DNA of 63,861 bases, the filler included, from Perkinsus chesapeaki ATCC PRA-425 (Eukaryota > Protista > Perkinsozoa): assembly GCA_013115145.1 (NCBI GenBank). It is 8 parts of 8 records of this genome, joined end to end, with 100 filler letters (N's around TTAATTAATTAA, not from the genome) between each part and the next. Parts side by side here need not be neighbours in the genome. Positions count along the whole stretch, not along the records: positions 37,059 to 49,508 come from JAAPAO010000813.1; 7 more parts are not named here. One strand, written 5' to 3'. Made by a program: the position numbers and the translations under genes. Under the pieces are notes generated by a model that was not told the origin of the DNA, did not search any database, and saw only the letters and a list, made by a program, of their open reading frames with translations. Of this stretch, positions 37,203 to 42,359 are shown piece after piece; positions within the stretch are counted from its first letter, which is position 1; the number at the start of each line of letters is the position of its first letter.

Positions 37203-40200
37203 ATGGCCGACATTAATCGTCTTCTCACTGCAGTAGAGAAGTCCCAATCTGAGATCGGGCGTAAGAGCAACATATGCTTACTTAACGTACAAACTTGTCG
37301 TTTTGCAGATGTAAAAGACCACCTTGAAGATGTGATAAAGCGAATGGACAATCTCAAGGACGACCTCGTCAAGAACGTCGAGTCGAGCCTTGCCATACAA
37401 AAAGAGAAATCGCACACCGTTACATTGAACTCTGGCATCGTCGAAACAGCCCTAGAAAAGATATCTCAGGACATGTCAAAGTCGGTTGAATTGCATACCA
37501 CAGTGCTATAGCCCCGGTGTGCTTAGGTTTAAGGCAATGGTTCGGGACGCAGCTGCTGCCCAAGAGGAAACACGGCAACAAGTACTTTGCTGTTGCGTTT
37601 AATAAGAGCGTAGTGGAAAACACCGTGTATTCAGAAAGCATCCTTAGTGAAGAAAAAGATAGGTCACGATGACAAATCAAGGTCGTTATTCGAGCGAGCT
37701 GGTGGCGACCGAAAGCTCGAGGCTGTTGTTGCCAACTTCTATGGTAGCAATAGTAAGCAGCCAGATGGTCACTTTAAGCACAGATAAGGCTGTGGCTGAG
37801 CCAAGAACCCGAGCGTATTTTGAGAAGAATACTCGCAAAGTGAAGCACTTGAAACAGAAGATACAGGCCTTCCTCGCTGCGTGAGATAAGGAAGGGCTCA
37901 TTAGTCTTAGTATAATAACCGTCGTTACTTATATTGATCAAATACCTTCTATTTCACATACAGTGTGCACTAGGCTACGCCCAGCTACTCATTTTCCATT
38001 GTGGGTCGCATTATCTACCACACGATTTGCGACAGGAAGGCATACATGTCCCAATGTTCATTAAACCAATTCTGGGACTCAGAATCGATTCCAGCATCGC
38101 ATTTTACGTGTAGAAAGCAGTTCTGGAATCAATTCTGAATTTCACAATTGGTTTCTTGAACGACCCCACAGGGGTGTACGGTATCAAAGGTCCCTTGATC
38201 GAAACAAGGAGCTGCTATTTTTATAACTTCTCCATTTAATTCAATTTCAGGATGCTCGGAGGCCCGTACACCTACGACACTACTACGCTGAAGCCTGCTC
38301 ACTATTACCTCAATGTCACAGACTTGCACTTTGATTGTGTCGTTGAATTATTCGTTCAAGCATTCAATGACGTAAGCCGCCCTTGGACAACAGGTTCGAG
38401 AAGACTTCTTTATAGGTTGGAGTGCACCCAGCTGTCACCGAAGAAGCGGGAAATCTCCTCGGCAAAGTAAGCCATCTTGTTCCATTTAGGTCACGACATG
38501 CTCCCTTCCAGACCCGTCGTCAAATAACCACTGGATATATAGTCAGAACCGAGCTTGCTCGGCGCAGCAACGAAGGTGGCCTGGACGCGCTTTACGAAAA
38601 ACTCATCGGCGAGCACGATGACTTGGTCCCGTTTATCGAGCGCTTAATGGACATATTCTCTTTGGACCAGAGGATTGTGTGGGCCTTCGAGGACAAAGAC
38701 ATCGAAGCGATGCAAGAAGGTCTTTTGTATTATCTCACCGACGTTCTCGGTGGTCCGCTAACTTACAAGGGCAAGAGCCTCTCCGCGATACATCGCTCCT
38801 TGGATCTAAACGACTACCATTTCGACGCTTTCCTAATGGACGTGGAAAAAGCCTTGTCAAGTCTAGGAGTTGACGACGACACTGTCGACGAGATTATCGT
38901 CATCCTCGAGCCACAGCGAGCGAGCGTCCTGTCTGGCCAAAAAAGGCGGGTTGAAACCGGCGCAAGAATTATTGACGGAAAGAACCTCTTGGAGCGCCTA
39001 GGAGGAGAAATGGCGGTCGAGGCAGTCGTAGACACCCTCTACGGCGCACTCATTCTGGACCCACGTGTCAAATTTTTCTTTCTGTTGGATGCTTCTCGTA
39101 TGAGGCAAATAAAAACGCGTATGACTCAGCTGTTGGTAGGGGCTTGTGGAGGGCCCAGATTGTACGATATAGCGAAGCTCAAGCCGGCTCATTTCCATCA
39201 CAACATCACCGACTATCATTTCGACGCCGTGTGCGAAAATCTGAGGGTCTCTTGTGAAGTAACGGACATACCGTCTGCTTTTATCGATGAGCTGTTGGAA
39301 ACCGTGGTCAAATTCCGACAGCAAATCACCAGTGGATGTAAGCGACCGTACACTAATAAGTTACCGCTTACCCCGCGATCGTGCCAGGCACAATTCGACT
39401 CGAAATTGCTCACCGAAAAACGGAGAGCGCTGGAACGGACAGTCTATATTCGCAGTTGGGAATGAAGGATGGCATTGTTGTCTTCGTCGATAAGCTTTTC
39501 AAGTATGCCAACTAACGCAACGATGCGCCGCAACAACATATCTCGGCTTTAGGCGGTTACACGCTGACCAGCGAATAGCGTACTTTTTCGCGGGGTCGAA
39601 GACTGAGGTTATTAAAGAGAAACTGAGTCTCTATTTGGACCAGATTTTCGGCGGAGTTGATGAGTAGGTCCATTCGTTGCTTACTCGAATTATCGACAAT
39701 GTCGATTCGACATAGACGTTCAAAATCTGATACTGACCTATCCCAACCCAATCCTGCCAGGTATACAGGTCGAGATATAGCTCAAGTTCACAGTCTGATC
39801 CAGATCAGTGATTTCCACTTCGATTGTTTTATACATGCATGTGCTCAATCTTTTGCGGAATCCGGCCTCGACGAAGATTCCACTGATGAGTGTAATGCAG
39901 CGTCGTGTGCTCTTTTTGCAATCGGTCTGGTCAGGTGTGGTGCTTCTGGAGGCAAACAGAGCGTCAGTTGTAAATTCTAATCGACGGGATCATGACGTGC
40001 GGAAAATGTTAGCCCTCGCAAACAAGAAGACCTTGTTTGAAATACTTGGTGGAGAGTCGGTAAGTCCAAGAATAACAAGGGTTTTGGAAAATGTCAGCTG
40101 TGGGGTTCGAACCCACGCGGATCTCTCCACCAGAACTTGAGTCTGGCGCCTTAGACCACTCGGCCAAACTGACTGATGGAATTTAGACTTCTTCGAGATC

Positions 40201-42359
40201 CTTAGTGCATAATTGCTTCTACTCAGTCCATTACTGGTGTTGTCGACAAAGTCTACGAGATGGCCGTTCTCGATAGTCGGCTCCGGTCCTTTTTCGAGAA
40301 AAACAAGGCGAAAATCCAGTCAATCAAGAAGAAGATGTCACAATACGTTTGTGGCCTGGTTGGTGGCCCTGTAAAGTACGATGAAGCTGACCTTCAACCG
40401 GCTCACTATGCCATAAACATCACAAACTACCACTTCGATTCTATACTCGAGCTATTCCGCATATGCTTGATCGGAGACAACGTCGAACGATCTGTTGTGC
40501 GCGACTTCATTAAAACTCTCCACCCCGTCAGACGATTGGTAACGACAGGATTCACGTTGCGTACTGAACTGGCTAAGCGAAATCTGGAACACGGACGAGA
40601 CCAGCTATTCCGAAAGCTTGGGGAGAGCGAGGGCATCCTGGCATTAATCGACAAGCTATTTGGCATTCTGTTCACCGACCCTAGAGTGAAAGACTTCTTC
40701 GCTGACAAAGAAGAAACAAAAGTAAAGGCTATAAAGAAGGGGATAACGACTGTGCTTGTAGAGACGTGGGGCGGCCCGAAAGCCTATCAAGGTGAGCCGT
40801 TGGAAGTTTATTATCACCTAGAGGCTTACTACTCAGGTCGAGAGATCGCGAATATCCATCGAGAAGTCGGACTAAACGACTATCATTTCGACGCATTCCT
40901 TGCTGATTTGCAGAAGGCTCTCATGGGCGGTGGGGCAGATGAGCAGCTCATCGATGAGGTTTGTCAATCGATATCCCGAAGTGAGCATGCATTGCCCGTA
41001 GGTTATCGTGACGGTGGAGCCCCTTCGGCAGGGTGTCCTCAGCCGTAAAGAAAACGATGCCACACAGCTTGCGCATAAAGACGGAGTGGTATAACCCCTT
41101 CGCGTGATTCAAAGGGATGTTTGACCCTTGCAGGCCCTTGTGGAACGTCTGGGTGGTGATCTCAACCTGGAGAGTATGGTGGAGAATCTATACGAAAAAT
41201 GCCAGGAAGATACGAGGATTAAGTAGGAAGCTTCCGTTTTGATGTGCTTCTGTGGTAGTAGTGCCTCCAATAAGGTACTTCTTCGACAAAGGGAAGTCCA
41301 AAGTTAGGCAAGTGAGAATGAAGATGTATCAGCTCCTCAGCGGCCTCTTCGGTGACCATTGCGGTTCACACTGTTGCCAATGGAACACCTGGTCTCAGGC
41401 GGACCTGTTCAGTATGACATTGAGAACCTGAAGCCTGCTCACTATGCGATGAACATCAAAGATTACCATTTCGATACGGTGCTCGAGCTAGCCCAGGAAG
41501 TGATGAGGTAAAACGACATTCGTCTGAGTAGCGGACTCTGCACCGCTAATGGTATCAGTTCAATGGACCTCAACGCTGATGCAATCGATGATGCCCTACA
41601 AATAATGAATATGGTCCGCTCGGGTATAACCACAGGATCCTCAGTAAGACATTCGTGCAACCCAAAACAGTAAACGTGCCCATCAGGTTCGAACAGAAAT
41701 GGCTCGGCGGCAGGGGCAAATTGACGGGCATGATTTCCTCTTCACTGCGCTAGGAGGCCCAGATGGTAGCCGTGTCCAGCGTGAAGGTGCGAGCGAGTGT
41801 GCATATGCTTCTGGTAGGCACTGACCACTTCGTGGTTCGGCTGTTTGAAGTTATCGGATTAGACAGGCGGCTTAATATGTTCTTCGATGGCGACAAGGTG
41901 AAGGCTATGAAGTCTGCGCTGGTAAGGAGTCACTGACAATATGCCCTTTGTTGGGGACTTGTGACCGTCGACTCCCTTGTTATCATAGGACTAGTTATTG
42001 CTCGACTTTCTCAAATTTACACGGCAATATTTTCGGCAATTTTTTTAATTTGACCGCGTTGATGATAGGTCGACTACATGACAATGGTATTTGGTGGCCC
42101 AGCAGGATATGTCGGTCGCCCACTAGAAGAGATCCATGCAGTCCTATCGATCAATGACTTCCACTTTGATTGCTTTCTCAATGACGCTCAAAAGGCTTTG
42201 CGTGACCTCGGAATGGAGCAAGACGTTGTGGATTACGTAAGTCTACCACCTGCCTGATCCCCCGTTACGCACTCCCTCTAGGTTCTGGTGACGATGGACT
42301 CCCAGCGCCCGAAGGTATTAAAGCACTTCTATGAGGAACGAGGAATTGTATATGCCTGA
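37203..42359 (+). CDS. Multi-domain globin: N-terminal coiled coil plus eight tandem group I truncated (2/2) haemoglobin domains
   Basis: About 20 exons splice in frame. Eight repeats each contain L.E/.LGG, a CD1 Phe (YF/FF), GG.+Y, a proximal His (KPAH/xIH) and (Y/F/L)HFD. Stop TGA at 42357-42359. Confidence 0.9.
40092..40173 (-). tRNA. tRNA-Leu(CAA), intact, antisense within a globin-gene intron
   Basis: GTCAGTT-TG-GCCGAGTGGTCTAAGGC-G-CCAGA-CTCAAGT-TCTGG-long variable arm-GTGGG-TTCGAAC-CCCAC-AGCTGAC-A. All stems pair, and TTTT follows. Confidence 0.95.

Follow-up and report, generated by a model that had tools for sequence, protein, structure and literature searches.

An eight-domain gene with two alternating types of truncated haemoglobin in a Perkinsus genome

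To our knowledge, truncated haemoglobins have been studied almost wholly as single domains, and multi-unit forms are known from database surveys only. Multi-unit T1 globins were catalogued in silico (Hade, Kaur, Chakraborti and Dikshit 2017, IUBMB Life 69:479, as cited in PMC7475203 and PMC8076648). Haem pockets with the Tyr/Gln combination have been linked with high oxygen (O2) affinity and with enzymatic use, and hydrophobic ones with low affinity and a part in transport or storage (PMC11904497). Ligation by the residue at E10 leads to hexacoordination, which aids electron transfer; pockets of the type found in Chlamydomonas THB1 combine Tyr B10 with Gln E7 and Gln E11, and in the K(E10)M variant of THB1 the Met becomes a ligand in the ferrous state (PMC11904497). 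Here we describe a gene in a 63,861-nt window (the whole stretch of DNA analysed, which joins eight parts of the Perkinsus chesapeaki ATCC PRA-425 assembly GCA_013115145.1). Its predicted product carries eight group-I truncated haemoglobin (TrHbN) domains of two diverged types, hereafter A and B, in the order A-B-A-B-A-B-A-B.

Two domain types in strict alternation

The eight domains have the profile matches expected of bona fide TrHbN. Pfam PF01152 (Bac_globin), for which the cut-off is 21 bits, was matched by exon 38422-39465 with 88.8 bits, by exon 40260-41048 with 53.6 bits and by the exon of the last domain (B8) with 27 bits. All eight hidden Markov model (HMM) matches lie on one spliced frame and span essentially the full domain profile, which is the organisation of a multi-unit truncated haemoglobin (at least two complete tandem units on one polypeptide). 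The residues required for holding haem, which are the proximal His F8, Phe CD1, the EF Gly-Gly hinge and Phe G5, are kept in every domain. A1, A3, A5, A7 and B8 have the complete Gly-Gly of the AB hinge, of which B2, B4 and B6 retain one Gly.

Sequence identity is 35-43% among the odd-numbered (A) domains and 34-43% among the even-numbered (B) domains, against 22-34% between the two types. A careful maximum-likelihood (ML) tree was built from 65 domains: those of the window, of P. marinus and P. olseni and of five environmental sequences, together with five single-domain TrHbNs of bacteria. In this tree the A domains (support 99/98) and the B domains (99/99) form reciprocal sister clades, and the bacterial outgroup forms a clade of its own (98/91). 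The odd/even label requires one change, compared with a mean of about 22 after shuffling, and none of the 500 shuffles was as low. Forcing domains 1 and 2 together was rejected by the approximately unbiased (AU) test (log-likelihood loss of 98; p-AU 2e-5). The strict A-B-A-B pattern is real and far beyond chance. It had been proposed in a first-pass annotation made from the sequence alone, and the domain-wise phylogeny set beforehand as its check does separate odd from even domains.

Across species, the domains group by their position in the array (domain 5, 97/92; domains 3 and 7 together, 98/97; domains 4 and 8, 81/57; and domains 2 and 6 in a second tree, with 98 in the Shimodaira-Hasegawa-like approximate likelihood ratio test [SH-aLRT]), and therefore all eight positions predate the divergence of these lineages. 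Clades uniting domains 1 and 5, or 2 and 6, were not rejected (p of 0.44 and 0.39, respectively). The data are compatible with a doubling series, from AB to ABAB to ABABABAB, that would have ended before the Perkinsus lineages split. The proposal of a two-domain unit duplicated four times is right in that an A-B unit was amplified with its asymmetry kept, but two successive doublings fit at least as well. One intron position is identical in B6 and B8 and lies one base off in B4, which is suggestive but weak support for duplication of the unit at the DNA level. A and B arose once in the lineage, when a single TrHbN was duplicated, and then diverged; the A-B pair was amplified afterwards. A and B together form one clade, and the multi-unit proteins of the diplonemid Lacrimia and of two environmental sequences fall outside it, with repeats that cluster by protein. 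Since these other multi-unit truncated haemoglobins are homotypic and lie outside the A+B clade, the heterotypic design is specific to the Perkinsus-type family.

The helix numbering on which the pocket assignments depend was checked against solved TrHbNs by HMMER alignment. B2 aligns with the Tetrahymena protein 3AQ5 without internal gaps, giving Met at B10, Met at E7, Gly at E10 and Leu at E11. In the alignment of A3 with Mycobacterium tuberculosis HbN (1IDR), B10 is Tyr, and Leu54 (E7), Lys57 (E10) and Gln58 (E11) of HbN correspond to Ile, Arg and Met, respectively. A second alignment, to the Tetrahymena protein, has a gap inside helix E that would shift E7 alone; the register counted back from the EF Gly-Gly was preferred because helix E is unbroken in the AlphaFold model.

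The two types differ in their distal pockets. The motifs quoted in the first-pass annotation are all present in the spliced model: the B10 contexts (ANFY, DTLY, DKVY and ENLY in odd domains; ERLM, DKLF, DKLF and VRLF in even ones), the proximal His motifs (KPAH, KPAH, QPAH and KPAH in odd domains; AIH, QVH, NIH and EIH in even ones), the ends of the odd domains (ITTG, ITSG, VTTG and ITTG) and the linkers that follow them (IVRTELARR, TIRLEIAHR, TLRTELAKR and SVRTEMARR). Tyr B10, nearly invariant in classical TrHbN-1, is found in the four A domains only, where E10 is Lys, Arg, Lys and Lys; B2 carries Met at B10, and B4, B6 and B8 carry Phe, in agreement with the original description of both types. 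The even domains had also been described as having mostly Gly or Ala at E10, which is the case in B2, B6 (both Gly) and B8 (Ala) but not in B4, where the residue is Lys. Position E7 is Leu, Met, Ile, Ile, Ile, Ile, Val and Met in domains 1 to 8. At E11 the A domains have Ile, Met, Met and Met, and the B domains Leu, Leu, Ile and Leu. G8 is Val, Val, Ile and Val in the A domains and Phe in all B domains. The reported lack of the usual Gln E7 and Gln E11 is borne out, as Gln occupies neither position in any of the eight domains.

Relatives are found in Perkinsus, in metagenomes and in a diplonemid. The exon carrying B2 and A3 shares 77% identity with a Logan protein that falls in one 90% cluster with the P. 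marinus orthologue XP_002778420 (P0174), and the domains of this orthologue are 77-81% identical to those of the window. Other relatives are P. olseni KAF4665176 (P0160), P. chesapeaki KAF4651942, several eight-domain metagenome proteins and the 12-domain protein of Lacrimia. The P. olseni protein (2375 aa) has 16 TrHbN domains and represents a further doubling of the eight-domain array, since domain 1 lies near domain 9 in the tree, domain 2 near domain 10, and so on to domains 8 and 16. Comparison with the P. marinus orthologue indicates purifying selection on both types: synonymous sites are saturated, and the nonsynonymous divergence (dN) is 0.11 for B2 and 0.15 for A3.

Family signatures were drawn from about 100 domains. 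Family A domains have Tyr (sometimes Phe) at B10, Ile at E7, Lys or Arg at E10 (Arg in about one third of them) and Met at E11, with an invariant Asn right before helix G and a Thr close to the C-terminus. Family B domains have Tyr B10, Ile or Val at E7, a small residue at E10, Gln E11, Phe G8, an Arg at six positions N-terminal to His F8, and a helix H that contains acidic residues. Most B domains keep the canonical Tyr B10/Gln E11 pair, and therefore B ancestrally had the orthodox pocket and A, with its Met E11, is the deviant type. The hydrophobic pocket first ascribed to B is present in this gene, in the P. marinus orthologue, in one P. olseni fragment (FOZ60_011991) and in domains 2 and 6 of two environmental relatives, but it does not extend to most of the family. 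These apolar pockets (Met/Phe B10, Leu/Ile E11) represent a secondary loss.

Several relatives depart from the regular array. In the environmental eight-domain proteins P0017, P0018 and P0020, domains 5-7 are degenerate, with low HMM scores and split matches, and the first four domains and the last one are intact; domain 5 of P0017 has Leu in place of the proximal His, and P0020 matches the profile only in fragments at domains 5-7. A distant relative of 478 aa (P0041) has an apparent B-A-B order. Its middle domain branches at the base of the A clade and has no A signature (Phe B10, Asn E10, Phe E11). The protein may represent an early branch of the A/B design.

Structure prediction points to the A-B pair as the unit of the array. 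The AlphaFold (AF2) model of the window exon with B2 and A3 has a mean predicted local distance difference test score (pLDDT) of 83.7 and a predicted template-modelling score (pTM) of 0.52, with good domains and a disordered B-to-A linker. In Foldseek it matched 3AQ7 with a template-modelling (TM) score of 0.91 and a root-mean-square deviation (rmsd) of 1.7 Å over 116 columns, and HbN with a TM score of 0.84 and an rmsd of 1.9 Å (1S56, TM score of 0.84). The opposite arrangement, A followed by B, was modelled on domains 15 and 16 of the P. olseni protein, since the corresponding units of the window are split by introns. This model reached a pLDDT of 92.5 and a pTM of 0.87 and shows a long helix (residues 115-136) that starts where the A domain ends and continues through the conserved linker. 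The structural unit is predicted to be A-B, because the pTM is 0.87 for A-B against 0.52 for B-A with its disordered linker, and the protein would consist of four rigid modules on flexible B-to-A tethers. Within each module, A and the following B would form a rigid covalent heterodimer joined by a helix through the ITTG-x-VR-x-E-x-A-R linker, as predicted for the P. olseni paralogue. No solved or ESM-Atlas structure spanning both domains of an A-B module was found.

Gene structure and surroundings

The piece of the window that holds the gene (37059-49508) is eukaryotic in character, with fragmented open reading frames (ORFs) and globin-like segments that switch between frames. Three-frame translation and enumeration of splice junctions gave a gene of 21 exons at 37203-42359 (+ strand), with 20 GT-AG introns and a product of 1182 aa. 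Junctions were chosen to keep the frame open and the domain length constant, and were joined in a local script. The features are as follows.

37203 to 42359, + strand: coding region, from the start ATG at 37203 to the stop codon ending at 42359, a single open spliced frame.
37203 to 37682, + strand: N-terminal non-globin region of about 116 aa, containing intron 37503-37634 (alternative donor 37485 possible).
37683 to 38535, + strand: domain A1, 118 aa, four introns, of which 37744-37783 might use donor 37753 instead; placed with the other A domains in the tree; pocket residues Tyr B10, Leu E7, Lys E10, Ile E11, His F8, Val G8.
38536 to 38586, + strand: conserved A-to-B linker with the IVRTELARR motif.
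38587 to 38937, + strand: domain B2, 117 aa, with a PF01152 match, an alignment to Tetrahymena TrHbN 3AQ5 and a folded model; pocket Met B10, Met E7, Gly E10, Leu E11, His F8, Phe G8.
38938 to 38982, + strand: variable B-to-A linker, with pLDDT below 50 at residues 143-149 of the exon model.
38983 to 39336, + strand: domain A3, 118 aa, alignable with 1IDR (HbN of M. tuberculosis); pocket residues Tyr B10, Ile E7, Arg E10, Met E11, His F8, Val G8.
39441 to 39978, + strand: domain B4, 116 aa, three introns; pocket Phe B10, Ile E7, Lys E10, Leu E11, His F8, Phe G8.
40030 to 40550, + strand: domain A5, 118 aa, split by the 167-nt intron 40060-40226 and mostly covered by the P. marinus orthologue P0174; pocket Tyr B10, Ile E7, Lys E10, Met E11, His F8, Ile G8.
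40602 to 41046, + strand: domain B6, 119 aa, introns 40792-40836 and 40959-41001; pocket Phe B10, Ile E7, Gly E10, Ile E11, His F8, Phe G8.
40792 to 40836, + strand: in-frame intron of 45 nt in B6 (donor AAG/GTGAGC, acceptor ...CTCAG/G).
41134 to 41637, + strand: domain A7, 118 aa, three introns; pocket Tyr B10, Val E7, Lys E10, Met E11, His F8, Val G8.
41735 to 42326, + strand: domain B8, 116 aa, three introns, followed by a 10-residue tail and the stop at 42327-42359; pocket Phe B10, Met E7, Ala E10, Leu E11, His F8, Phe G8.

The locus is one nuclear gene of a Perkinsus-like alveolate encoding a protein of about 1180 residues, in which no targeting domain was recognisable. A single gene is supported by the one open spliced frame, by the nine introns that match those of the annotated P. 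marinus orthologue XP_002778420, and by the existence of relatives with 8 or 16 domains on single polypeptides. Sequencing runs of two studies contain 0.90-0.97 of the sampled words of the stretch. The globin array had at first been placed at 37680-42359; the end is correct, but domain 1 starts at 37683 and the gene begins upstream, at 37203, with a non-globin exon. The first 24 residues of this N-terminal region match the N-terminus of an eight-domain relative, P0014 (50% identity over 28 columns, E of 9e-6), and relatives carry an equally long region, their first domain beginning at residue 107-122. The region has no match in Pfam.

The first-pass annotation also needs correction in domain 6, from which the in-frame 45-nt intron at 40792-40836, one of the nine that agree with P. 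marinus, has to be removed. Reading through it creates a spurious insert of 15 residues before the proximal His of B6. The P. marinus orthologue reads ...GGPKTYQGREIANIH... at this site, without the insert, and the spliced B6 agrees in length with B2, B4 and B8. An insert of 14-15 residues in domain 6, considered as a local duplication, was dropped in favour of the intron on the basis of splicing and the P. marinus comparison. Three splice choices are uncertain (for two introns the donor, at 37485 or 37503 and at 37744 or 37753, and for a third the acceptor, at 39715 or 39760), and none of them affects pocket residues. The last concerns B4, where intron 39664-39760 was picked from the domain alignment and the 52-nt alternative 39664-39715 would add 15 residues.

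The introns across 37203-42359 are uncommonly short and uniform: 15 of the 20 measure 40-52 nt and the other five 97, 132, 147, 167 and 370 nt. Their donors are mostly GTAAG-like. The 167-nt intron that splits A5 contains an antisense tRNA-Leu(CAA) gene (40092-40173, - strand), and a tRNA-Ala(AGC) gene (42603-42675, + strand) lies 244 nt 3' of the globin stop (ARAGORN; Rfam RF00005, 55 bits). This tRNA-Ala was the sole match in an Rfam scan of 40168-49508. The 6.8 kb or so downstream (42700-49508) contain short ORFs only, and nine neighbouring ORFs have no Pfam match. The downstream DNA, of which about 7 kb were compared, has no similarity to CAF1A and glutathione synthetase, the genes flanking the P. 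marinus locus. This P. marinus locus (L001; GG677709.1, 43647-54672) has three runs of 100 N at 3333-3432, 5607-5706 and 7275-7374, which is why XP_002778420 is annotated as a partial, mis-joined protein of 731 aa. The exons of domain 1 and the start of domain 8 are outside the annotated P. marinus gene, and the gaps leave domains 1, 4 and 8 and the tRNA-bearing intron out of the comparison with P. marinus.

Possible functions of the A-B array

We consider it likely that the gene encodes an eight-domain A-B TrHbN protein whose rigid A-B modules carry out multi-haem chemistry on O2 or nitric oxide (NO) with two types of pocket. Such a protein would have a high capacity for reaction with O2 and NO, with two differing pockets in each module. 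The polar and cationic pocket of A (Tyr B10, Lys/Arg E10, Met E11) would favour tight or reactive ligand binding, or chemistry with an endogenous sixth ligand. The B pocket of the present gene, which has lost Tyr B10 and Gln E11 and is wholly apolar, would have a low O2 affinity of the transport or storage type. Lys and Arg exchange freely at E10, which argues for an electrostatic role of this position and against iron ligation as its conserved role; the Met E11 conserved in A is a candidate for an alternative distal ligand. It is plausible but unproven that the protein buffers O2 or clears NO for a parasite that lives in the haemocytes of bivalves, and a literature search found nothing specific on Perkinsus globin or NO biology.

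Several observations weigh against this interpretation. The Arg E10 of A3 speaks against Lys ligation as a conserved function of A, and the A3 domain of P. marinus has Phe at B10, so that Tyr B10 is not invariant in A either. The three uncertain splice choices are based solely on alignment logic, and no RNA run was found to contain the locus. The rigid A-B module was predicted from a haem-free model of a paralogue about 51% identical to A7-B8 of the window.

A stronger proposal along the same lines is an electron relay, in which a hexacoordinate and redox-active A domain (Lys E10/Met E11) would pass electrons to the pentacoordinate, gas-binding B domain of its own module, making it a self-contained redox enzyme, for instance an NO dioxygenase. 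The Lys E10 of A1, A5 and A7, the nearly universal Lys/Arg E10 and the conserved Met E11 of A domains, and the predicted rigid packing of A and B fit this proposal, as do the electron transfer favoured by E10 ligation and the ferrous Met ligation of the THB1 variant (PMC11904497). Yet in A3, and in about one third of the A domains of the family, Lys gives way to Arg, which cannot ligate iron; the Gln residues that THB1 has at E7 and E11 are absent, no reductase domain or partner was identified, and the B domains of most relatives have the canonical catalytic-type pocket with Tyr B10 and Gln E11. We regard the relay as unlikely. Somewhat more doubtful, in our judgement, is a general form of cooperation in which A-B would be an obligate covalent heterodimer with cooperating haems, through electron feed from a six-coordinate, redox-active A haem (with Lys E10 or Met E11 as ligand) to a five-coordinate, apolar B haem or through allosteric coupling. 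This would make it a 2-on-2 counterpart of the alpha/beta pair, repeated four times (eight in P. olseni) and possibly oligomerised via the N-terminal region.

Other explanations give the chain a different meaning. Polyproteins are common in dinoflagellates and euglenids, and perkinsids are the sister group of dinoflagellates. Cleavage at the B-to-A linkers, which are variable, basic and predicted to be disordered, could release four compact A-B di-haem proteins of about 30 kDa, the eight-domain chain being a delivery format. We find this improbable, as the B-to-A linkers have no cleavage motif in common, the N-terminal region shared by all full-length relatives suggests that the chain functions intact, and the long-standing orthology of domain positions is unexpected for interchangeable products. 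The protein could also be a haem store, buffer or scaffold that is not primarily gas-reactive, and its apolar B pockets would then be a sign that selection on ligand chemistry has relaxed. The B domains of the present gene do lack both ligand-stabilising residues, and some environmental relatives have degenerate middle domains, one of them without His F8. But the dN of B2 is as low as or below that of A3 with saturated synonymous sites, Phe G8 and the Arg six residues before F8 are kept in B across the family, and none of the eight domains has lost His F8 or Phe CD1, which makes such a role very improbable. Finally, chance similarity, a mis-assembled repeat or the joining of separate genes might be suspected in a gene model that has no transcript support, since repeats mis-assemble easily and the orthologous P. 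marinus locus has three assembly gaps. Against such an artefact stand the recovery of the sampled words in runs of two studies, the recurrence of the A-B order and of the number of domains in genomes and metagenomes of independent origin, the support for both clades together with the label shuffling, and the low identity among domains (22-43%), at which collapse of repeats is unlikely. We give it almost no weight.

The locus reveals one protist lineage that has fixed two diverged TrHbN types in a strictly alternating order and retained it through expansions to 8 and 16 domains. The family offers a natural system for studying how the tuning of distal pockets (Tyr/Lys/Met, Tyr/Gln or fully apolar) divides function between adjacent haems, and it raises the question of whether 2-on-2 globins can show inter-haem coupling. 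A further question is what such a protein does for a bivalve parasite of economic importance that is exposed to oxidants from its host and to scarce oxygen. Being small, isolated A, B and AB constructs lend themselves to direct tests.

Comparison with known haemoglobins

Among solved proteins, the A domains resemble M. tuberculosis HbN (1IDR), a TrHbN with NO dioxygenase activity. They align with it from end to end (E of about 5e-13) and share Tyr B10, an aliphatic E7, a cationic E10 (Lys57, corresponding to Arg/Lys) and the C-terminal ...TSG. They differ in Gln E11 (Gln58), which is Met or Ile in the A domains, and in architecture, since HbN is a single domain with a pre-A tail and the A domain is fused to a B partner. 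The likeness of the A domains to the Lys(E10)-His hexacoordinate THB1 of Chlamydomonas reinhardtii (4XDI, 6CII), drawn in the first-pass annotation, is partial. The fold is the same and A1, A5 and A7 combine Tyr B10 with Lys E10, but Gln E7 and Gln E11 are missing and A3 has Arg E10. Lys as a candidate iron ligand at E10 also occurs in B4, and family A as a whole mixes Lys and Arg. THB1 is also a weaker sequence match (E of 5e-7) than HbN or the Tetrahymena protein.

For B2, the best match in both sequence and structure is the Tetrahymena pyriformis TrHbN 3AQ5 (E of 2e-15; TM score of 0.91, rmsd of 1.7 Å). This protein has the Tyr B10/Gln E11 pair, like the B domains of the family at large but unlike those of the present gene. 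The hydrogen-bond network between B10, E7 and E11 is absent in the latter because these positions are occupied by Met/Phe, Met/Ile and Leu/Ile, respectively. In this respect they resemble TrHbN-2 proteins such as Shewanella benthica HbN (8UGZ; PMC11904497), with hydrophobic residues at B10, E7, E11 and G8 (MMLF in B2, FILF in B4, FIIF in B6 and FMLF in B8). Their Met or Phe at B10 sets them apart from TrHbN-1 and lies within the variation of TrHbN-2 (PMC11904497). Their closest relatives, unlike TrHbN-2, carry Tyr B10 and Gln E11, and the apolar pocket is probably convergent with TrHbN-2 rather than shared by ancestry, as judged on a tree without bona fide TrHbN-2 sequences.

As a chain, the protein is comparable to the multi-unit truncated haemoglobins already catalogued, which, as far as the survey is described in the papers that cite it, also include several tandem TrHbN units per polypeptide in protist parasites. 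It differs from the 12-domain protein of Lacrimia lanifica and two environmental proteins, whose repeats are homotypic and cluster by protein, in having two ancient, reciprocally monophyletic types, a strict A-B order and a conserved N-terminal region. Covalent multi-domain globins of the 3-on-3 class are found in invertebrates, as in the nine-domain chain of Artemia and the two-domain haemoglobins of clams and nematodes. These chains likewise carry many haem domains, but the present protein belongs to the 2-on-2 fold class, has an independent origin and is intracellular in a protist. As a functional analogy, the vertebrate alpha/beta dimer also pairs two diverged globin types as a working unit. 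What appears to be new in the present family is the strict heterotypic alternation, its antiquity, the predicted rigid A-B module and the lineage-specific apolar B pocket.

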